Below, piece after piece: positions 555-29,650 of a DNA stretch of 33,885 bases. The translations under genes and the position numbers were made by a program. The notes below the pieces were generated by a model that worked only from the letters and a program-made list of their open reading frames with translations, made no database searches and had not been told where the DNA came from. Each line of letters starts with the position of its first letter. Positions within the stretch are counted from its first letter, which is position 1. Source of the stretch: Octopus bimaculoides (taxonomy: Eukaryota); contig NC_068999.1 in assembly GCF_001194135.2 (NCBI RefSeq), forward strand, positions 26,675,185 through 26,709,069, given 5' to 3'.

Positions 555-2645
555 TTATTACCTCCGCCTTCGCTAAGGCGGAGGTATTGTTTTCAGTCGT
601 GTTTGTTTATTTGCCAAGATATCCCAAGAACCGGTTGATAGATTCAGAGGAAACTTTCAGGGATGTTTGGCCTCATGACAGGCACGAACTAATTAGATTC
701 TGAGATCGATCCGGTACCGGACAAAAATTCTGGATTATTTTTTCCTTTTTTTTTTTTTTTTTTTTTTTGAGAGCGGTCGGGTTCATTTTTAGTATTCTCG
801 TTTATGAGAGCAGTCGAGTTTATTTCAGATATTCTTATTTTAAAAAATCCTCTCTGGCTACTCGTTGAGAGGACGTTGCTATTGTCGTTAGTGTTGTTTT
901 TCAAATCATTTAATTCCGAGCTGTGTCAGTAATGTCTTCGCTCAGTGTGAGTTTTGTATTTTATTAATTAACTGGAATTGTTGAAATTGTTGTTAATTGG
1001 CTTTTATTTTTTCTTCCTCATTTATGGGTGAAATTATGAATAATACTGCCAGGGAAAGTAAACCAGCGAGGAGTTACGCTGCGGTGACTGGTAAAGGCCT
1101 GTCAGTAGAGGTACTGCAGGTCCAGGAAATCGAGTTATAGGAGAAGAATTAAAAAAAATATAATGGTTTGCTGGAGAAGGAAGGGGATAGCCTGAGATTG
1201 ACGCCCCCTGAAGAAATATTTGAAAAAACAGAAAAAAGGACAATTATTTATAGAACGTTGAATGTGACAACGAAAAAAGTCGAAGTAGCAGAGGAGGAAG
1301 CGGTAGAGGAATGTCTACGAGAGATAAAGGATATAACGACATATTACACCAGAGGAAAAAAATACGGCACAGTGGAGGTACGCTTTGTAAGCGAAGAAGA
1401 AGCGAGGAATTACTCCACTGTGCCTTTGAGATCAGCCGAGTAGGCACTGCTACCCACTTCCTGTGGCAAACGTGCGGCCAGAGTAAGAATAGATAGAGTA
1501 CCCCCAGAAATTGATGAGGCGTGGCTGGTGGCAGCCATCCTCTATAATACAGAGGAGGACTCTCAGGTGTTGAAGATATCGAGAACGTGAACTGTTGGGG
1601 GTATGGGCTGGAGGTGTCGGTCCATATCAGTCTGCCGGACCTCCACAAAATTGCGGAAGAGCTGGTGCTACCAGATGAGACAAGATTGAGAATCGTGGCG
1701 GAGGGGAAACCTCCGGTATGTTATTTATGTGGAGTAAGGGGACACATGAAGGCAAAATGTCCCCAGAAGCACGAACAGGAGGAGGCGGAGAAGGAGTGTC
1801 AGGAAGAAGAGGGCGCAACAGCGGAGTAGGAGGAAATGGTGGGAAAATATCCAGTAGTAGAAAGAAAGAGGAGTAACGTGGAATCGCCACCTAAAAGCCC
1901 GAAGAAGGAAAGAAAGGTAGAGGCGAACAAGAACGAGAAAAGAAGGGATGAGGAGTCAAGTGAAGAACGAACACAAAGACCGTTGCCTTCAACTAGTAAG
2001 GAGGAAGAAGGACGGAAGAAGAAGAGACCTGAAAGTGTGAAGGACGGACAAACAGAGACTGGTATACAGCAACAGAGGAAGAGAGTGGTGAGGTACAGCT
2101 GAGAGAGTCACCGAAAGGGAAATCTGAAATTAATTATAAGTTACAAAAAAAGTGTAGAGATAGAAAAGAAAATTTCAAAAGCGAAACATGTAATAAGGGT
2201 TAAAGTGGCAGACAATGAGCACAATCGAGATGAGAAAACGGTGCTGTTTGAGGAAAAAAGAGCAAGAAAGTTGCAGGAAATATTTGGCTACAGGATAATA
2301 ATGCCAGGAATTCGATTTCGTTATGACGAATTGCCATCAGTGGTAATAGTCGGTGTGACTTTGTTTGGATTTTTAAACAAAAGGAAAACTAACAAGATAC
2401 AAGACTGATTAGTGCACACTTTATTTAAAAACAGTAAAATTGAACTACCTGCTTTGCGGGGTAGGAAAGCCATTTCATTCTCATTTCCATTTATATGTTT
2501 TATATGTTTTTATGTACCCAATGTATTGTTTTGTCTGTCTTTTGTACTCTCCCTTCTCGTTTGAGGCCTTGTGCCTAATTAAAGAAAGATGGACGTTGGT
2601 GTTGCCTTGGCGGAGGTATGCACTCTCTGAATGCCATTGTTTAAT
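555..2645 (+). mobile_element. Non-autonomous Helentron (HINE/DINE-1-like) element with internal cargo
   Basis: 5' perfect 12-bp hairpin TACCTCCGCCTT-cgct-AAGGCGGAGGTA (559-586), then TGTTTGTT simple repeat and core. 3' subterminal inverted repeat GGCGGAGGTA (2609-2618) complementary to 559-568, followed by short hairpin GCACTC-tct-GAATGC (2620-2634) and a T-rich end. This layout matches described Helentron-associated elements. Confidence 0.72.
1024..2408 (+). pseudogene. LINE ORF1/Gag-like nucleic-acid-binding protein pseudogene (RRM-like region, CCHC zinc knuckle, charged linker, unknown C-terminal domain)
   Basis: Joined frames read MGEIMNNTARESKPARSYAAVT..., TVEVRFVSEEEA, ARVRIDRVPPEI and LRIVAEGKPPVCYLCGVRGHMKAKC (CX2CX4HX4C, ~1725-1770). 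Stops at about 1138, 1150, 1441, 1827 and 2100, and a frameshift near 1587. Purine-rich coding-like composition continues to 2408. Confidence 0.72.
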
Positions 2646-4027: not shown

Positions 4028-4717
4028 GCGATCACCGTGCACAGCTTATGGCGACCACCGTGCAATGACTAAGGAAAATAGTCTAATAAGCCCTCGACAG
4101 AAAAAAGAAGACTTTTCTATCTGCGTGGGAGTCGAACCCACATCTCTTTGTTAACGTGATTAAGTGTGTTACCTTTACACCAGCGTCAAATTTAAGAACT
4201 ATAGTAGTTCGTGTTTGTTTTTATGTAAACAAACTTTCTATATGCTTTCGGTGTAAATGGTTTTTTTAATACTGCGCCGAGTTTACAATCCTGTAAATAA
4301 TAATAGAATTTTTATATAAGCTTAAAGCTTATGGCGATCACTGTGCAATGACTAAGGGAAATAGTCTAATAAAGGGGTATATAAACCCTCGACAGAAAAA
4401 GAGAAGGCCTTTCTATCCGCGTGGGAGTCAAACCAACATACCTTTATTAAACCATTCCCACCGAAAGCGTATAGAAAGTTTGTTTGCATAAAAACAAACA
4501 CGAACTATTATAGTCCTTAAATTTGACAGAAATGGGAAGCGTGATTCGCTGGTGTAAAGGTAACTCTTAGTCTTGTTAACAAAGGGATGTGGGTTCGACT
4601 CCCACACGGATAAGAAAGCCTTCTTTTTTCTGTCGAGGGCTTATATGTCCCTTTATTAGACTATTTTCCTTAGTCATTGCACGGTGATCGCCATAAGCTT
4701 TAAGCTTATATAAAAAT
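4028..4717. repeat. Three copies of a ~250 bp tRNA-like unit (two direct, one inverted) forming a fold-back
   Basis: Copy A ~4043-4262, partial copy B ~4308-4452, inverted copy C ~4452-4717. Copy C has TGGTGTAAAGGTAA and a perfect T-arm TGTGGG-TTCGACT-CCCACA (4588-4606). Confidence 0.8.
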
Positions 4718-4934: not shown

Positions 4935-5235
4935 TAAAGAATAAAGTTTAGAATGGTACAACAATGCACTATAAAGCAAAAAATGGACTATATATCTGTT
5001 GTAACTTGGTTATCTATAGTCCGATGATATTTTGGAATTACAATTCCTTCTTCAGATCTTCTTAGCTGGAGTCTAGACTCCAGCTAAGAAGATCTGGACT
5101 CCAGCTAAGAAGATCTGAAGAAGGAATTGTAATTCCGAAATATCATCGGACTATAGATAACCAAATTACAACAGGTATATAGTCCATTTTTTGTTTTATA
5201 GTGCATTGTTGTACCATTCTAAACTTTATTCTTTA
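4935..5235. repeat. ~300 bp near-perfect palindrome with hammerhead-like core in the arms
   Basis: Arms are reverse complements with about 4 mismatches. Perfect 44-bp central palindrome at 5053-5096 plus a 21-bp tandem duplication (5076-5096 and 5097-5117). CTGAAGA-A-GGAAT-tgta-ATTCC-GAAA-TATC at 5115-5144. Confidence 0.88.
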
Positions 5236-9239: not shown

Positions 9240-10385
9240 GTGTGAGTGTGTGTGTCTCTGTGCACGTCTCTATGTGTGTGTGTGTATATACATGTGTTTG
9301 TGTGTGTGGGCCGTTTTGATTTGTCCCAGAGTTTATTGTGGCGTGTGTATATGGGTCTGTGTATGTTTTATATCTGGTAGGATGGTGTGCGTATATGTGT
9401 GCACGTTTGTGTGTGTGTATGTGTATGATTAATATTTGTTAGGGTGTTGTGTGTGCGCATGTGTGTGTATGTGTTTGTTCATGTGTGTGTATGTGTACGT
9501 GTGCGTGTGAGCAACCGTATGTATGTGTGAGGGTGCATATGTATGTGGGCGTCTGTGTGCGCGCGTGTGCTTGTATGATTTTTGTGTTGGTGGGATGTTA
9601 AGTGTGAGTACGTGAGTGTGTGTGTGTGTCTCTGTTTGAGTATGTTTTTGCTGTTTTAATTGTCCTTGTGGCGTGTGTGTGTGTGTGAGAGCAACCGTAT
9701 GTGTGTGTGAGGGCGCATATGTATGTGTGCGTCTGTGTGTGTGTGTGTGCATGTGTATGTCTGTGTGTTTTGTGTTGGTGAGGATGTTATGTGTGTGTAC
9801 GTGAGTGTGTGTGTGTGTGTCTCTGTCTGAGTATGCTTGTGTTGTTTGAATTGTCTTTGTGGCGTGTCTGTGTATGTGTGAGCAACTGTATGTATGTGTG
9901 TGTGGGTATGTGTGAGTGTGTATGTGTGTATTTTATTTATCAGGGGTTCTGTGTGTGTCCGTGTGTGTTGGGTTTATTCGGGTGGTGTGTATGTGTGTGC
10001 ATGTGCGTTTTGTGTATGTTGGTATTGAGTATGCGTTTGCGCGCGCGCGCGCGCGTGTATATATGTAGGTATGGTTTATGTAGTTTNNNNNNNNNNNNNN
10101 GGGGGGGGGGGGTGCACATGTGTGTGTGTGAGCGCTGTATTTGTGAGTGATTAGTTTTGTTTGTATTGTTAGTGCAGTGTGTGTGTGTATACGTGAGTGC
10201 GTCTATGTGACTTGTATTTGCCGGGGAGGTGTGTCATTGTGTGTGTGCATGCTTGTGTGTATGTGTGTTTGTGAGTGTTTGTTGTGATTGTTGGGTTTGT
10301 ATTGTGTGTATATGTGTGTGTGTGTGTGTGATTTTTTACTGGGGAACGGACGTATTATGTTTATGTGTGTGTGTGTGTACATATG
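9240..10385. repeat. Complex TG-rich microsatellite array with ~185 bp higher-order repeat
   Basis: GAGCAACCGTATGT recurs at ~9509 and ~9688, with a variant at ~9879, each with matching downstream unique motifs. Confidence 0.85.
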
Positions 10386-10387
10386 TG

Positions 10388-11990
10388 TCCAAAGTTAGAA
10401 ACAAAACTTTGGACAAATTTTGTGACTACATTTCAAACTTTCCTTATAGTGAACTTCCACAACCTAAACCCAAACCCAACATCAGTAAAAGGGAATGGGA
10501 AATCATCTATGAGTTACGAAACAATCATGACATCACAATCAAGGAGGCAGATAAGGGTAGTACTGCCGTCATTATGGATACAAAAACTCTGTATCTCACC
10601 TCTTACAAGACACTACCTACTATGAAAGAGTAGTCAACTACCAACAATCAAAATCAATGACCAAATTAAACAGACTCATTAGCCAACACTGAAATAACTT
10701 AGCAGCAAAGGAATGCGACTACCTAACAAACTTTAATTGCAAAACCAGCATCCTCTATAGGCTTCCAAAAATCCACAAGAGCACAATTATTACCGAAGCT
10801 TGCAAAAAGTCCACTTCAACCTACATCACTGTACCACATCCCACTGATCTCAAACTGAGACCAATTGTGGCAGGCCCATACTGTGAAACACACAGATTAA
10901 GCAACTTTATCGATATCCTCTTGAAACCAATACTTAAACACATACCAAGTATTGTAAGAGATCACTTGAACCTACTAAATCATCTCCCCAAACATACCAA
11001 TAAAGACATTTTCATTTTCTCCTTTGATGTAATAAACCTTTACACTACGATCTCACATCAATATGGACTGGAAGCCATTAAATTCTGGCTAGAAAAATAC
11101 CTCAATGAGGCCCCAGTAAGAATAAAAAAGAATTCATCATCGAGGGCCTTAAGTTTATCCTCCAAAACAACTTTTTGAATTTTAATAACACCTACAGACA
11201 GGTATCAGGGACAGCGATGGGTACTAAAGTTGCCCCTACTTATGCAAACCTGGTGATAGCCTACCTAGAATTACAAATTTATGAAGAATCCAAATCTAAA
11301 TACGGCCTGTCTTTCCACATATATCTGTTGGAGAATTGGTAACGCTACTTGGATGATTGCCTCATCCTATGGTCCCACACACCCGACCAACTCATTGATT
11401 TCAAAAACTTAATCAACAGTGTCAACAACCATATCCAATTTACAATGGAATATAGTCAAGACCAACTACCTTTTCTTGACATTCTCATTATAAAAAGCAC
11501 CAGCATTGAAGCTGATATCCACTACAAACCAACTGAATCCAAACAATACCTTCTGTTCATTACCAATCACCCGAAACACACGAAGACAAACATTCCCTTC
11601 GACCTAGCGAGAAGAATCTGTACAATTGTCTCAAATTATAGAACACGAAATAAAAGACTCCAAGAACTAAAGGCAATTCTTCTCGAAAGACATTACCCAG
11701 CATCATTAGTTGACAATGGAATAGAACGGGCCAAGACAATTGCTACCTAAGACTTGCGAAAACCGGAACACACTCACAGTACATTAAATAGTCTCCCATA
11801 TCTCTCAATACACAATCCAAGAAATGCAGAAGCTTACACAATTATATACAAGAACATCCCACAGCTGAGTCAAGGCCCACGTCTAAAAAAAGCACTCGCA
11901 ACCCATAAAATAATGAAAAGCAAAATACAACCCAAATCCTTAAAAAAACCTACTCACCAATGCAAAATTACCCAACACAAGCCCGCCACC
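10388..11990 (+). mobile_element. Penelope-like retroelement reverse transcriptase pseudogene (Penelope/Poseidon type)
   Basis: Motifs across frames: IKEADKGSTAVIMD, LPKIHK, LRPIVAG, SFDVINLYTTI, GTAMGTKVAPTYANL, RYLDDC, FLDILI, YKPTESKQYL and HPKHTKTNIPF. Several frameshifts and stops. No GIY-YIG visible before the gap. Confidence 0.92.
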
Positions 11991-15625: not shown

Positions 15626-16050
15626 TTATTTACTAATATCACTAATATTTGTGAAACCCTTAGCAAAGAAAAGTGCCTTCATCAATAACTCTATTGAAAT
15701 CGATGGATAAAAATTGACAAAGTCTAACTGTGTAAACCTAGCCCTGCCTCTGACCCCGTTGGCAATAAACCACGAGGTTACCTTATTGGTGCTACTCCAT
15801 AGATAGAGGCTCGTGTGTCTTCTTATGTCAACATTAATCTTCCTCAGTTTATACTTACTCGTCTGGCCAATCTCAGATTTGGTCGGGTTGATCAGACGGC
15901 ATTTGGGGTTAGAAGCAAAATTCAGCTTGTCTTTTAAAGTGATAAAGGCATTTCTCTTGGCCAATTTCTCTACTCTGTCTGCTATACCTAGGCTAACTGC
16001 GATGTAGAAAGTTAAATTTTTTTGTCTTTGTATAGAGTCTGTCGAGCTGT
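15626..16050 (-). mobile_element. Second, distinct Penelope-like RT fragment (resembles Naiad/Chlamys-type RT)
   Basis: AFITLKDKLNFASNPKCRLINPTKSEIG...STNKVTSWF...FTQLDFVNFYPSI..LLMKALFFAK. The sequence stops before the YxDD region. Confidence 0.75.
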
Positions 16051-17675
16051 CTACAAGGCTTTGGCTTTGTGGATACGAAACCTTTGGTAACTTCATGTCC
16101 AAAAACTAACATTTTTGTTGTAATAATTACTGTTCTATTCTTTAGAGTATGCTTCTTTTCTGATATATGTATTATTGACTATATATATATATATATATAT
16201 TTGTTATATTTATATAGTTTGTGTTGCTGGTATCTGTTTCAAAAGCCTTAAATTCTAGGGAAGCGTGATTTCCGTTTAGTTTACGAAAGTCAATTGTGAT
16301 ATTTAAATATTCAATGCACGCGTTTATATATGTAATAAGGCCGCCACCGTTTGTATAATTTGATTTGTATATAATTTGGAATGCTGGCAGTTCTGTGTTT
16401 AAGTTGTAAGAATGCTTCCTGAATTATTGTTACGTGATTATGGTGTGGTTATAAAATCTTTTAGTTCAGAAAACGTGATTTTAATACCGTTAATATCGAA
16501 CCAGTCCAGTTGGGTTGGTGGAAGTGTTGGATGATCGGGGGAGATGCCTAACGGTATCTGTTCCGATTCTTTGTGTTCTGACAGTAACACCAGCAACGAT
16601 ACTGTTGCCAAGCTGTGTCGGGTCAAGTCGGTGAGCCTCCCTCGGATAAATAAGCATCAATGGTATGGAAGGGGAAGACTTGTATTCATGGGCAATTGCT
16701 ACTCTTCTTCAAAAAATCATATTCAGGCCTGCATATACATGTTCATATGTATGATCAACATTGACTGACAGAGTCCCTACAATGTCATACTGCAGAATTT
16801 TTATATTTTGATGTGCTATACTTACAAAGTTTGATTTTGTGCATGAAGCATTCATTATTGCATGTATTCTGTAGGGACCCATGAGATAACAGCGACACTT
16901 TCTTCGTATGTTATTTGTTGTACTTTGGATTTGGTAGATGTTTATTCGTTTGGAGCTAGGATTCTTGGTGCTTGTTGTTGTAAAGCTGTAATTGTTATGC
17001 AGTTGTCTTGGGAACGGTGGGCGGCATAACTGCTATGTCTTCATATTTATTTGTGTGTATGCGTGCTATATATTGAAAATTCATATTTCTGTTAAAACTA
17101 AAATAAAATCCTTTAATTAAATATTTTATATAGTCATTAAGTACAACAATAAAACGTGAAATCATAATCAAAAGCAAAAATGTTCATATGCTCAAAATAG
17201 CCAAGTTTGATGAAACATATGCTTGCTTTCCTGTGTTTTAAAGAAAAATACTAGCAAGTATTTCAACCTAAATACATTGAATTTCTATTTTAGTACAATG
17301 CTAAAGAGTAATATACGCCAGTGCATAATCGAACCAATCAACTCGCGGTATATTATTGTTTTTTTTTCATGCCGAATATAGAATGATGAAATTCAGGCTG
17401 GCTTTCGTGGTGGTTTTTTGCAGGAATCGCTTTACTAATTCTGCCATCAACCACCTTCTCAATCTTGAAAAATTAGAATGTATAATAAATTGTCTAACAT
17501 ATATTATATTTCAACAACGAGACGAAACAATATAGTAAGTGACAACATTTAGTTTCATCCCTTTTGGTTCTGGATTGAAATATAACCGAAGCTATCTTAT
17601 CTATTTCTTGAGATTACTAAAATACGGCACCAATAATATGCCAATTTGATTCAATCGATTATATTTGTCGCTAGA

Positions 17676-18720: not shown

Positions 18721-18964
18721 TGAAAGGCAAAGTCGACCTCGGCGGAATTTGAACTCAGCACGTAGCGGCAGACGAAATACAGCTTAGCATTTCGCCCGGC
18801 GTGCTAACAATACTGGCAGCTCACCGCCTTAGTATTAGAGATAATTGTGAAGACGCGGAGCCTAGGGGTTGGGGTGCTGCACTCATGACTGCTAGATCGT
18901 GGGTTCGATCTCCGTACTAGGCGGCGCAAAACCCTTCATTTCACGTTACCCCAGCCCACTCAGG
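18721..18964. repeat. Inverted duplicate of 19805-20048 (two head-to-head SINE 5' halves)
   Basis: 244 bp reverse-complement match at about 96% by eye. Both SINEs are truncated at the copy edges. Confidence 0.9.
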
Positions 18965-19639: not shown

Positions 19640-19917
19640 AATTATCACGGTGTTGACCAGACTATCGGATGGTGATAGACATCGCTGGCCACAATGAGCT
19701 TCGCATTGTTTTAGCCTTCGAATGATGCCATCTCGCTGGCTAAGGCGAGCTGCCACCCCCCTCGCTATCGAAAGACTATTCCGTCTGAAGGCTACCCATT
19801 TACACCTGAGTGGGCTGGGGCAACGTGAAATGAAGGGTTTTGCGCCGCCTGGTACGGAGATCGAACCCATGATCTATCAGTCATGAGTGCAGCACCCCAA
19901 CCACTAGGCTCCGCGTC
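19640..19917 (-). mobile_element. Full-length tRNA-derived CORE-like SINE
   Basis: Minus strand has GCGGAGCCTAGTGG (A-box), GGGTTCGATCTCC (B-box) and TTCACGTTGCCCCAGCCCACTCAGGTGTAAATGGG (CORE-like). Confidence 0.8.
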
Positions 19918-19938
19918 TTCACAATTATCTCTAATACT

Positions 19939-20146
19939 AAGGCGGTGAGCTTCAAGTATTATTAGCACGCCGGGCGAAATGCTAAGCTGTATTTCGTCTG
20001 CCGCTACGTGCTGAGTTCAAATTCCGCCGAGGTCGACTTTGCCTTTCATCCTTTCAGGGTCGATAAATTAAGTACCCGTTGCGTACTGGGGTCGATCTAA
20101 TCGACTCCCCCAAAATTTCGGGCCTTGTGCCTAGAGTAGAAAAAAA
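19939..20146 (+). mobile_element. Full-length tRNA-derived SINE with 16-bp target-site duplication
   Basis: B-box GAGTTCAAATTCC, central GCCTTTCATCCTTTCAGGGTCGATAAATTAAGTACC and an A tail. TSD AATTATCTCTAATACT at 19923-19938 and 20147-20162. Confidence 0.88.
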
Positions 20147-25639: not shown

Positions 25640-26300
25640 GCTGTGTTACTGTGTCTTCCATTACACTTAAACAATTACGTCTCAGAACTTGTCCTTATAC
25701 TCACCAAACTCCTTAATCTCTATGGAGATAAACCTTGATATTTGGAAGCATGTTTCAGTGTGTCCCATTCAAAAGACCTAGCCAACTATCATTTCATTGC
25801 TCTCACTTCTAACAAATTTAACAAGATAATGTGAAGCGACCTACCCTCGTATGTCATGCAACAGTTGCTCTCTCATTTCAGAGAAGTTTGGCGAAAGCAA
25901 TGTTGTGGCTCTTGACATTAGCAAAGCTTTCTATTGGGTCACACATACAAACTTCCTTTCTAAACTGCTAGTTAACGTGTTTCGCACATCTCTCATCTCT
26001 TGGATCAGTTGCTTCCTATCAGATCGCACCATTAAGACATGTACTGGTAGAGCTCTTTCTGCCCCGTTCTCAAACAGCTCGGTGTCCTCCAGGTTTCGGT
26101 TCTGTTTCCCAGTGTCTTCCTTCTATACATTAATGACCTACTCCCTGCCACATCCTATTACATCCACTCTAATACAGATGGCACTTTCCTTATTCATACA
26201 TCACTCACACGCAAACCTAAACAACAGACGTCAAATCTGCACTGGTTCTCTAAATAGAGACTTTGATAGCATCCTCTAGTCTAGCCATGCAAACCTTTTT
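25640..26300 (+). mobile_element. CR1/L2-group LINE RT remnant with internal deletion
   Basis: WKHVSVCPIQ...ANYHFIALTS, GESNVVALDISKAF and SWISCFLSDRTI. Heavily disrupted. Confidence 0.8.
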
Positions 26301-26342
26301 TCCTTTGGCAGTTAAAAAAGAAACTTTAAAAAAGTACTACTC

Positions 26343-26453
26343 TGGTATGCAGCCTCATCTCTCTCTCTCTCTCTCTCTCTCTTTGGTTTTCTATCACTAC
26401 TAAAATGGCCTCTGCTCCTCAAAGCTAGCTGGTTTCGTGCCTCTATCGCTCAG
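26343..26453 (+). repeat. Direct copy of 27081-27263 flanked by a 17-bp duplication
   Basis: Same unique sequence on both sides of a shorter (CT)n, with 1 substitution. TTAAAAAAGTACTACTC at 26326-26342 and 26457-26473. Confidence 0.85.
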
Positions 26454-26604
26454 TAGTTAAAAAAGTACTACTCATATCAAGAAAACACCACCGCCTGATA
26501 CCAACTCTCTAAATATGAGTTGTACTCAGCAAGAGCCTCTGCAACCGTTTCAAATGCTGGGTTTTATTATCAGGATCTCTTCTGGTGGAAGCTCATCGTT
26601 AGCA

Positions 26605-26890
26605 TAGCTAAGACTGCATCGGAGCGATCTGATAGGAAGCAACTGATACAAGAGATGAGAGATGAGCGAAACACATCACCCGGCAGTTTTGAAAGGAAGC
26701 TTGCATGTGTGATCTGATGGAAGGCCTTGCTGATGTCTAGAATTACAACATTGTTTTCGTCTAAAGTGAGAGACTAACTGCTGCGCGACATAGGAGGGTA
26801 GGTCACTTCACATTATCTTGGAGATGTTAGAAATGAGAGCAATGGGACGATAGTTGGCTTAGGTCAGAGAGGTTGCCTCTTTAGTCCTAG
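26605..26890 (-). mobile_element. Inverted paralogous CR1-like RT fragment
   Basis: Reverse complement is roughly 80% like 25770-26030 (ENNVVILDISKAF, SCISCFLSDRS) and shares the same deletion junction. Confidence 0.75.
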
Positions 26891-26899
26891 AGGATATTT

Positions 26900-27300
<401 letters not shown>

Positions 27301-27644
27301 CCTTGGTGGGTCTAACTTCTCATTTACCTGCACCATCCACTATTCCCAATCCGTCACCTCCAGAACATCGTCCCCTTAGAATCTTCTCCTCACTCATATC
27401 TTTTCTGCATGAACATTAACGCCATCGATCTCGCAACTCTCTAAGGTCATGTACTTTTCTCTTTCCACCAGACTCAACAAGTAAAAAAACGAAGAAAGAA
27501 AATTTCAGATTTGTTTCCCAAATTAGTCGTTATAAAGATAATATAAAACCGTCACTCGCAAACGAGAATTACTTGGCGTTAGCATAGACCATTCTTTTGC
27601 CGAAACATTTAAGACGAAACACACGTAGCGAGAGAGAACTACAT

Positions 27645-28781: not shown

Positions 28782-29650
28782 TACGAGGTGGTATCAAAAA
28801 GTTCCAGGACTGGTTATGATGAATAAAAAATAACTTATTTATCTAAGCTTTAATATCATCTCCTTCAAAATAGTCACCTGGCGTAGCAATATACCGGTCC
28901 TAGCGTTCCTGCTACTTTTGAAATCCGGCCTGGAAGTCGTTTTCCGTAAGTGAATCGAGGACCTTCTGCGATTTGCTCAGGATCTCGACAACAGTGTTAA
29001 AACGGCGACCTTTGAGCTGCATTTTTATCTTGGGGAAGAGATGGAAGTGTGCAGGAGCTAAATCTAGCGAATAGAGTGTGTGCGGAGCAATACCATGTTC
29101 TTTTTGGCTAGAAATTTACGTGTGAAGAGTGCTCAGTGACAGGGTGCATTGCCGTCGTGAAGAATTCAATTTTTCGCGCGCCACAGATCCGGTCACTTTC
29201 GCCGAATGTTCTCCATCAAATGCTTCAAAACGTCGTTGTAGAACTTTCGATTCACAGCCTGACTCTGGGGAGTGAATTGTCGATGCACAATACCATATTT
29301 CCGGGGTTGACGATCGTTCATCGTATTCCAGGGACGTTCTTCCGCTTTTGAAGCACTCGTGACATTCGAAACATTGCATACAACCCATTGCCTCGTAGCT
29401 ATAAGCTTGCCAAAGCATGCTCAATGTCTCTGTAGCAGACTTCTCAAGTTTAACGCAAAATTTCATGTTGGCTCATTGTTCTGTCCATGACAAAATCGCA
29501 GACTATAGCATACACATGATCACAAAAACACAAATTTCACAACTTGCCTGATGAAGGTCACTGCTAGCTCTCACAGCGCATGCAACCGTGAGCTGTCATC
29601 TGTTGGTGCGCTAGAGAACTAGACCGGGAACTTTTCGATACCACCTCGTA
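28782..29650 (-). mobile_element. 869 bp internally deleted mariner with intact TIRs
   Basis: 27-bp TIRs TACGAGGTGGTATC(A/G)AAAAGTTCC(A/C)GG. N-terminal MKFCVKLEKSATETLSML...FKSGRTSLEYDER fused to a C-terminal HDDNAPCH region. Confidence 0.92.

Follow-up and report, generated by a model that had tools for sequence, protein, structure and literature searches.

A probable nested insertion of an ORF1-only LINE derivative in a HINE-like repeat of Octopus bimaculoides

We analysed a 33,885-nt stretch of Octopus bimaculoides DNA (the window) together with a comparison sample of ~165 kb of octopod DNA. The locus is very probably an ordinary nested insertion, a 1.7-kb ORF1-only "half-LINE" inside a short Helentron-type (HINE-like) repeat (Table 1). 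The nesting is demonstrated at the level of sequence: three other copies of the HINE are collinear with window positions 555-884 and 2605-2641 and run uninterrupted across the junction, without the 1.7-kb unit. The locus consists of two known kinds of element, one within the other, and HAL1 and HeT-A come closest to the ORF1-only unit. The original prediction had been of a rolling-circle element that captured a retrotransposon RNA-chaperone gene and amplified it as a chimeric family. That part did not hold, as the gene is found in none of the three other HINE copies and no HINE termini surround the other ORF1-only copies. What we found is instead the outcome named as contrary to that idea, a one-off nested insertion with its own target-site duplication (TSD) and with distant relatives of the ORF followed by an ORF2. 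The supposed rolling-circle amplification of a chaperone gene reduces to routine nested insertion, with no cross-class chimera to pursue. An Rfam search of the whole window gave no matches at gathering thresholds, and a Pfam search of the other TE-looking ORFs in the window gave none.

Table 1. Positions in the window of the outer repeat, the inner unit and their parts
Feature	Position	Strand	Remarks
Outer element, 5' part	555-884	+	TTAT terminus, 5' subTIR, inverted repeat, body to insertion point
TTAT terminus	555-558	+	5' end of outer HINE-like element
5' subTIR TACCTCCGCC	559-568	+	10 nt; starts 4 nt past family 5' end TTAT
Inverted repeat GGCGGAGGTA	577-586	+	Complementary to 5' subTIR; 8-nt spacer
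Poly-T tract, HINE left arm	738-768	+	TRF: period 1, 31 copies
Central tandem repeat of HINE	764-835	+	TRF: 1.9 copies of 37-bp unit, score 93, 80% matches
Left copy of 14-nt direct repeat GGACGTTGCTATTG	871-884	+	Putative target-site duplication
Nested ORF1-only LINE derivative, 1,706 bp	885-2590	+	Absent from three other HINE copies
5' UTR of inner unit	885-1023	+	
Decayed ORF1, ~450 codons	1024 to ~2376	+	Intronless, co-oriented with HINE
SYAAV motif	1072-1086	+	In ORF1
CCHC knuckle CX2CX4HX4C (CYLCGVRGHMKAKC)	1719-1760	+	Pfam zf-CCHC E = 3.8e-4, at gathering score
3' UTR of inner unit	~2377-2590	+	Ends ...GTGCCTAATTAAAGAAAGAT
AATTAAA	2577-2583	+	At place of AATAAA inside conserved LINE-family 3' tail motif
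Right copy of 14-nt direct repeat GGACGTTGGTGTTG	2591-2604	+	Abuts 3' end of gene unit
Outer element, 3' part	2591-2641	+	Aligns with L002 15005-14955 and L005 copies
3' subTIR GGCGGAGGTA, exact	2609-2618	+	Within outer element 3' part
Degenerate small palindrome GCACTC-tct-GAaTGC	2621-2635	+	3' of 3' subTIR
T-ended 3' terminus ...CATTGTT	to 2641	+	Outer element end

The outer HINE-like repeat

Three further copies of the outer element were identified, two in locus L005 (O. bimaculoides) and one in L002 (O. sinensis). Window 555-884 can be aligned from end to end with L002(-) 15977-14998, L005 2727-3064(+) and L005 3451-3084(-) at 77-85% identity. The family 5' terminus, TTATTACC, matches the element start at 555 and begins all four copies, and the three copies with a complete 3' end finish in ...TTGTT. 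No TSD of the outer element was found, the flanks of the four copies sharing no repeat. The repeat family is ~390 bp long and non-coding and has the HINE/DINE-1 layout; the two 37-bp central repeats are conserved in the other copies, the position of the poly-T tract, at which HINEs have a microsatellite, is T-rich in all three, and the inverted repeat of the 5' subTIR is retained by L002 and L005B, whereas L005A has lost part of it. As judged from sequence, the outer termini have the Helentron-associated (HINE/DINE-1) layout that had been predicted, in the window and in the three other copies, which supports the presence of a HINE-like family in octopods. No description of Helentron-type or HINE elements in cephalopods was found in the literature searched.

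The terminal structures were borne out unequally. The motif GGCGGAGGTA is located at 559-568(-), 577-586(+) and 2609-2618(+), and with one mismatch allowed it has 4 matches in the 33.9 kb compared with 0.27 expected. The 5' hairpin and subTIR predicted at 559-586 are real: the palindrome TACCTCCGCC-ttcgctaa-GGCGGAGGTA folds at -14.2 kcal/mol (z = -7.7), and the element start matches the four-copy family terminus. At the 3' end, where a subTIR and hairpin had been placed at 2609-2634, the subTIR is exact but the hairpin of the window copy is not above chance (-3.6 kcal/mol, z = -0.2). A palindrome GCACTC-tct-GAGTGC (5-6 bp) is seen across copies, each of which folds like shuffled sequence when taken singly (z = -0.2, -1.65, +0.55). 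Two other assignments of the outer element were rejected. A classical Helitron on the minus strand, with the 5' palindrome as its 3' hairpin, lacks its CTRR end, and alignment of the four copies places the element on the plus strand with its 5' end at 555; a simple TIR element at 559-2618 has no TSD, and family homology runs 23 nt past the 3' repeat.

HINE/DINE-1 elements carry, 2-4 nt inside the 5' terminus, a subTIR of 11-15 bp, and they have an inverted repeat complementary to it 1-22 bp downstream, microsatellite and/or central tandem repeats, no TSD, and T or TT at both termini (Thomas et al. 2014, PMC4067079; Vojvoda Zeljko et al. 2020, PMC7492417). Like HINE/DINE-1, bivalve Pearl and Cg_HINE, the octopus element is short, non-coding and multi-copy. 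Its 5' subTIR lies a few nt from the terminus, with the inverted repeat after a spacer of 8 nt; a microsatellite-like tract and central repeats follow, then the 3' subTIR and, across copies, the small palindrome. The termini end in T, and no TSD is seen. It differs from known HINEs in that its subTIR is only 10 nt, possibly 11, it has only two central repeat units, its 3' subTIR lies ~33 nt from the end, compared with 38-60 nt in mite HINEs, and no autonomous partner is linked to it.

The insertion junctions

Where the original prediction saw no obvious TSD around the gene, we found a 14-nt direct repeat whose copies, GGACGTTGCTATTG and GGACGTTGGTGTTG, adjoin both ends of the inner unit and are identical at 12/14 positions. 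In the gene-less HINEs the repeat is single-copy (GGACATTGGTGCTG, GAACATTGGTGTTG and GGATGTTGATGTTT). The two nhmmer matches in the window overlap at HMM positions 306-334, indicating that this stretch of the HINE occurs twice in the window. A repeat that flanks the unit and is single-copy in empty HINEs is the signature of a TSD-forming insertion, and no route of Helitron-type capture known to us would leave the flanking sequence duplicated like this. The sequence GGACGTT (the first 7-8 nt of the repeat) also starts the LINE units of L003 and, in the L002 LINE, lies close to the 5' end, so that part of the putative TSD could instead represent microhomology or the 5' end of the element itself (alignment z only ~2.3). 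Site-specific integration at GGACGTT would suit L003 and the window, though not the junctions of L004, L006, L001 or the SINE, and is kept as a caveat. For the ORF1-only copies of L001, L005, L006 and L007, local alignment yielded no TSDs or 5' ends better than those from shuffles; these copies are too diverged for either to be defined.

The inner gene and its relatives

The gene within the unit is largely as predicted: co-oriented, intronless and decayed, with ~450 codons compared with the ~460 expected, and the SYAAV motif, the CX2CX4HX4C knuckle and the AATTAAA near 2577 are all present (Table 1). No poly(A) tail and no endonuclease or reverse transcriptase (RT) adjoins it, also in line with the prediction. 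The ORF is interrupted by in-frame stops at 1138, 1150, 1441, 1827 and 2100 and by frameshifts near 1563-1590 and near 2345-2360. Its layout comprises two RRM-like domains, the CCHC knuckle, a K/E-rich linker and a C-terminal ...FGxxxxxxGxxFxYDELPSVV; the corresponding family motif, ..LKExFGxxVxPxGxxVxFxELPxV.., is conserved and has no Pfam match. RRM-like segments had been proposed for this gene. For P0001, whose alignment was shallow, the AF2 model reached a pLDDT of 51 and was set aside in favour of a model of P0018, an intact family member, built on a 73-sequence alignment, in which pLDDT is ~90 over residues 30-260. The top PDB matches of this model are all tandem-RRM proteins, with probability 0.99, supporting RRM-like folds in the ORF1, as predicted.

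The window gene is a type-I LINE ORF1 (RRM + CCHC) without ORF2, homologous to the ORF1 of octopod L1/Tx1-like LINEs, as the prediction of a LINE ORF1-like gene lacking ORF2 had it. By tblastn it is 34% identical to a LINE ORF1 (E = 2.5e-38), and by BLASTP P0018 matches the L003 ORF1 (E = 2e-28). More distant ORF1 relatives have an ORF2 downstream at all four of the loci L002, L003, L004 and L014, with the domains Exo_endo_phos, RVT_1 and zf-RVT in L003. The protein family has 215 matches at E <= 1e-3, octopod for every source looked up. Type-I ORF1p of L1/Tx1-clade LINEs has one or more RRMs ahead of a CCHC knuckle (the Khazina & Weichenrieder classification, summarised in PMC5203782). The octopus family resembles it in RRM and CCHC and in having relatives upstream of an APE+RT+zf ORF2, and differs in the lack of ORF2 at the window copy and in the extra conserved C-terminal motif of the family.

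Further ORF1-only copies, without ORF2 and without HINE termini, occur at L001, L006, L007 and probably L005. No ORF2 homology was detected within 10 kb of the ORF1 copies of the window, L001, L006 and L007. At four ORF1-only loci from three species the ORF1 is followed by a ~220-250-bp 3' UTR and then a LINE-type tail, with no ORF2 remnant, and the 3' UTRs of ORF1-only copies are alike directly downstream of the ORF1 stop. The 3' tail of the inner unit can be aligned with LINE 3' UTRs and with the tail of a SINE. The Argonauta LINE is flanked by a perfect TSD of 16 bp, that of the SINE sharing the 3' tail motif is 14 bp long, and neither has a poly(A) tail. Together, these results support an ORF1-only LINE derivative with a 3' tail common to autonomous LINEs and a SINE. 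The intact members P0018 and P0037 are 386-404 aa long. Among the ORF1 copies compared, pN (0.25-0.36) is well under pS (0.63-0.72), and dN/dS between copies is ~0.2, below the value of 1 that the prediction had set in its check for purifying selection. A neighbour-joining split of ORF1-only from ORF2-linked ORF1s has a bootstrap of 55% (111/200). No contig records encoding the O. bimaculoides gene models P0001, P0002 and P0005 were found.

The mammalian HAL1 (half-L1) encodes only ORF1p and depends on LINE ORF2p (PMC5753468). Like the octopus unit, HAL1 is a non-autonomous LINE derivative with ORF1 alone; its ORF1 is of type II (coiled coil, RRM, CTD) and it is polyadenylated, whereas the octopus unit has a type-I ORF1 and a specific, non-polyadenylated LINE-family tail, and would be of independent origin, in molluscs. 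HeT-A of Drosophila is a non-LTR retrotransposon with a Gag/ORF1-like protein that contains zinc knuckles and no reverse transcriptase. It is a jockey-clade element that inserts at chromosome ends and serves in telomere maintenance, and nothing suggests these properties for the octopus unit.

Competing explanations and proposed history

Helitron-class elements capture host DNA, and the gene lies wholly within HINE termini in the same orientation. A Helitron-like Rep gene fragment also exists in octopus, a decayed Rep N-terminus in L005 that no HINE terminus adjoins. These points would suit capture of a LINE ORF1 gene by a Helentron-type non-autonomous element that amplifies it as a chimeric family, but we consider this highly improbable: the gene is absent at the shared internal junctions of 3/3 other HINE copies, the ORF1-only copies elsewhere (L001, L006, L007, probably L005) are not flanked by HINE sequence, the gene unit is bordered by a duplicated 14-nt HINE segment, and it ends in a LINE-type 3' tail, such as a complete retroposon should have and a captured fragment should not. 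It is less improbable, though still unlikely, that the nesting is correct and the outer element is a MITE or foldback of a TIR transposon, or another unclassified repeat, with no relation to Helentrons. Its subTIR falls short of the published HINE range (11-15 nt), the small 3' palindrome does not reach significance in copies taken singly, and no autonomous Rep/Hel/EN partner with these ends (TTATTACCTCCGCC... / ...GCACTCTCTGAGTGCTCTTGTT) was found in the ~165 kb of octopod DNA. A TIR element should, however, leave a TSD, and there is none at 4/4 copies; moreover, the inverted repeat lacks symmetry, being terminal on the 5' side and ~23-33 nt internal on the 3' side, and the order of subTIR, inverted repeat, microsatellite, central repeats, 3' subTIR and palindrome is that of mollusc and Drosophila HINEs.

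A separate question is whether the ORF1-only copies form a self-propagating lineage. Full LINEs could have given rise to them by separate internal deletions or 3' truncations, or they could be retrocopies of a host gene domesticated from ORF1. The bootstrap of the ORF1-only clade is weak, the boundaries of the other ORF1-only copies are not definable by alignment, and intact members of 386-404 aa with a dN/dS of ~0.2 would also fit a host gene. Against such origins, which we regard as rather unlikely, the combination of ORF1, 3' UTR and LINE-type tail without ORF2 remnant is shared by four loci in three species, and resemblance between the 3' UTRs begins just past the ORF1 stop. The lack of a poly(A) tail is expected of the LINE family and not of mRNA retrocopies, and many decayed fragments (the 215 matches) are dispersed through the genome.

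The HINE/DINE-1 layout is that of non-autonomous elements mobilised by Helentron-type rolling-circle transposons. Under the nested-insertion reading, a ~390-bp non-coding repeat of this layout inserted without a TSD, and a non-autonomous 1.7-kb unit derived from an octopod L1/Tx1-like LINE, retaining the 5' UTR, ORF1 and LINE-family 3' tail without ORF2, then retrotransposed into it, between the central repeats and the 3' subTIR, duplicating ~14 nt of HINE sequence. We infer that the ORF1-only unit was mobilised in trans: its RNA may be bound by its own ORF1p, through the two RRMs and the CCHC knuckle, and copied at a nicked target by the ORF2p (endonuclease/reverse transcriptase) of a related autonomous LINE, which probably recognises the shared 3' tail (...TTGTG..AATAAAGAAA). 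The LINE family leaves 14-16-bp TSDs and no poly(A) tail, and the window copy decayed after insertion.

More tentatively, octopods may possess an old and diversified half-LINE lineage, its ORF1 under purifying selection, propagated by the ORF2p of autonomous relatives via the shared non-polyadenylated 3' tail. If so, molluscs would have arrived at the HAL1/HeT-A strategy on their own, and some members of the lineage might still be active or domesticated. The ORF1-only derivative would be useful for the annotation of cephalopod repeats, many gene models described as 'CCHC-type domain-containing' being fragments of it, and the octopod unit gives a setting outside mammals in which to study the borrowing of ORF2p by ORF1-only elements.

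Outer element and its gene-less copies

The comparison set consisted of 14 loci obtained via protein look-ups, seven of which are genomic (L001-L007, 17-23 kb each), together with two protein databases and the literature; all looked-up protein relatives came from O. bimaculoides, O. sinensis, O. vulgaris or Argonauta hians. Both the terminal 10-mer repeats and the 5' hairpin of the original prediction were recovered in the window. With at most one mismatch, GGCGGAGGTA matched four times in 33.9 kb versus 0.27 expected, and the 5' palindrome forms a 12-bp stem (-14.2 kcal/mol, z = -7.7). The predicted 3' hairpin did not hold up, folding no better than shuffled sequence in the window copy (z = -0.2). 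At the O. sinensis locus L002, picked on grounds unrelated to the outer element, we found a minus-strand copy with 82-85% identity to window 555-710 and 701-878, and the match runs from 701-878 straight into 2591-2641, with the gene absent. Two further copies, tail to tail in the O. bimaculoides locus L005, also align across this junction without the gene. As defined by the four-copy alignment and an nhmmer profile, the element is ~390 bp long, starts with TTATTACCTCCGCC and ends in ...GCACTCTCTGAGTGCTCTTGTT, and no flanking duplication was seen at any of the four copies. Extrapolating from four copies in the ~165 kb of octopod sequence sampled, the copy number may be high.

The element contains a 5' subTIR 4 nt from the end, a complementary inverted repeat 8 nt beyond it, a T-rich microsatellite-like tract, two tandem 37-bp units, a 3' subTIR and a small palindrome. 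Published descriptions of Drosophila DINE-1 and mite HINEs (PMC4067079), as well as of oyster Cg_HINE (PMC7492417), list the same substructures. The prediction of HINE-type termini stands as far as this list goes; unlike in HINEs, the octopus subTIR is 10 nt rather than 11-15, the 3' palindrome is weak and no autonomous Rep/helicase/endonuclease partner is linked in the sampled loci. At L005, a decayed Helitron-like Rep N-terminus sits 13 kb away from the two HINE copies. Its best matches are octopus PF14214 (Helitron_like_N) proteins, then Galendromus occidentalis (mite), rotifers and spiders, and the nhmmer profile found no HINE terminus beside it. Overall, the outer element behaves as HINEs do and probably belongs among them. 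We found no description of Helentron-type elements in cephalopods in the literature searched.

Nested insertion of the gene unit

Where the original prediction saw no obvious TSD around the gene, a 14-nt direct repeat flanks the gene unit. This sequence is single in the gene-less HINE copies and lies on both sides of the unit in the window, and the two window nhmmer matches overlap on the profile, directly showing duplication of HINE sequence. The inner unit ends in a LINE-family tail motif, ...TTGTCCC.TCT.TGTT..GCC..TGTG...AATAAAGAAA. Diverged forms of this motif also terminate the remaining ORF1-only copies, an abundant SINE and, at L003 and L004, the 3' UTRs of autonomous LINEs. The machinery of this LINE family leaves TSDs of a size matching the window repeat without a poly(A) tail; the TSD is a perfect 16 bp at the Argonauta LINE and 14 bp at the L001 SINE. 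The nhmmer profile found no HINE sequence around the other ORF1-only copies in the sampled loci. The duplication, the tail, the TSD size without poly(A) and the HINE-free copies are each predicted by TSD-forming retrotransposition. It had been proposed that a Helentron-type element captured the gene and amplified it as a chimeric family; these observations and the three gene-less HINE copies speak against capture, and no route of capture known to us would leave carrier sequence repeated on either side of the captured DNA. The earlier observation is confirmed in part, and its reading as a capture finds no support: what this locus holds is one TE nested in another in the ordinary way.

The two 14-nt copies mismatch at two positions. 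GGACGTT also opens the L003 LINE units and occurs close to the L002 LINE's 5' end, so the left copy may include some of the element's own 5'-terminal sequence, joined via microhomology, a reading whose underlying alignment is weak (z ~2.3). The TSD could be 8-14 nt long, with the nesting unaffected. Three different LINE-family members carry (A)GGACGT(T/G) at the 5' end or close to it, and the HINE target contains it too; the motif may be a terminal part of the element, a trace of microhomology or a sign of target preference. The 3' tails of the L001 SINE and of the LINEs hardly differ, which suggests a LINE-SINE partnership.

Features of the window and comparison loci
Feature	Position	Remark
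GGCGGAGGTA	559-568(-), 577-586(+), 2609-2618(+)	10-mer
Direct repeat	871-884; 2591-2604	GGACGTTGCTATTG; GGACGTTGGTGTTG
Gene frames	1024 to ~1590; to ~2345; second shift, then stop near 2374-2376	ancestral stop
In-frame stops of gene	1138, 1150, 1441, 1827, 2100	
SYAAV	1072-1086	
CCHC knuckle	1719-1760	Pfam zf-CCHC
AATTAAA	2577-2583	
tRNA-like SINE head	1-130	window begins inside it; no ARAGORN call
tRNA-Thr(TGT)-like call	4542-4614	amid local direct and inverted repeats
143-nt palindrome	4935-5077 / 5093-5235	near-perfect; candidate TIR or foldback element
244-nt inverted repeat	18721-18964 / 19805-20048	97% complementary, arms 840 nt apart; candidate TIR or foldback element
Transposon-like ORFs (by eye)	10229-11750(+), 15626-16102(-), 25851-27419(+), 29116-29466(-)	RT-like and mariner-like motifs; no Pfam match at E <= 0.01
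(A)GGACGT(T/G)	window:870-884; L003:2445, 7718, 12995; L002:~7790	
SINE	L001:8440-8675	within ORF1-only copy; intron in gene model; TSD GGTTATGATGTTTC
Insertion in HINE copy	L002:15173-15819	O. sinensis; ~650 bp, flanked by 10-nt repeat TGGGATCGAT
Tandem LINE units	L003:2445-17026	O. vulgaris OX597840.1; ORF2-linked
ORF2-linked LINE	L002	O. sinensis
ORF2-linked LINE	L004	Argonauta
ORF2-linked LINE	L014	ENA assembly
HINE pair	L005:2727-3451	CM046628.1; spacing 20 bp
Rep N-terminus	L005:16203-17192	

The gene and its ORF1 family

The decayed gene with its SYAAV motif, CCHC knuckle and AATTAAA signal was located as predicted. A family profile search returned 215 proteins at E <= 1e-3, every match with a looked-up source being octopod. 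None of the ten longest matches scanned carries an RT or endonuclease fusion, and those with other domains look like gene models that merge the ORF1 with a host gene. In the UniProt/RefSeq octopus gene models P0016, P0023 and P0124, ORF1 fragments are joined to domains of host origin (WD40, RGS, LDL-receptor class A); these are most likely annotation chimeras from intronic TE copies. The predicted RRM-like segments are borne out by the AlphaFold model of an intact member, P0018 (pLDDT ~90 over residues 30-260), whose PDB matches are tandem-RRM proteins only, e.g. IMP3 RRM12, nucleolin RBD12, HuR and Sxl (probability ~0.99). These matches identify the family protein as a type-I ORF1p (PMC5203782), and the gene is a LINE ORF1. 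Independent assemblies of six runs from a single study gave near-identical Logan contigs (L008-L013, SRR11869384-94) that carry a more distant relative, P0030 (294 aa); four of the contigs are ~1.7 kb long and two are shorter (1,279 and 1,070 nt).

An ORF2 follows the ORF1 of every more distant relative (31-36% identity; L002, L003, L004, L014), and closer ones (37-56%) are standalone. The intact L003 ORF2 (1,132 aa; Exo_endo_phos, RVT_1 and zf-RVT) fits the L1-Tx1 LINEs annotated earlier in O. vulgaris (PMC13282606). L003 holds three head-to-tail autonomous L1/Tx1-like units (period ~5,285 bp). Each starts with AGGACGTTACTTTG, and directly before its ORF1 ATG the 5' UTR contains a run of ~30 A residues; unit 1 has the intact ORF2 and an open ORF1. 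This array could mean self-targeted or site-specific insertion. As predicted for the window, no ORF2 homology was found within 10 kb of its copy, nor of those at L001, L006 and L007; an assembly gap lies downstream of the L005 copy. The one-off nested insertion that the original prediction named as its refutation agrees with the ORF2 of distant relatives, the window TSD and HINE enclosure only here among sampled loci.

A possible ORF1-only lineage

Among the sampled loci, four in three species share one layout (ORF1 stop, ~220-250-bp 3' UTR, LINE-type tail), and the 3' UTRs of ORF1-only copies are alike. Repeated deletion or a host-gene origin would be an alternative source of such copies. A lineage is favored by the common layout and similar 3' UTRs, by the existence of intact members and by the divergence between copies: pN (0.25-0.36) is far under pS (0.63-0.72), with dN/dS ~0.2 at a dS near saturation. 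Against it stands a neighbor-joining split of ORF1-only from ORF2-linked ORF1s in just 111/200 bootstrap replicates. We give the ORF1-only form a roughly even chance of being a HAL1-like self-sustaining lineage. Drosophila HeT-A works like the octopus inner element. So does HAL1, the mammalian counterpart (PMC5753468). The octopus element combines a type-I ORF1 with a family-specific, non-polyadenylated 3' tail.
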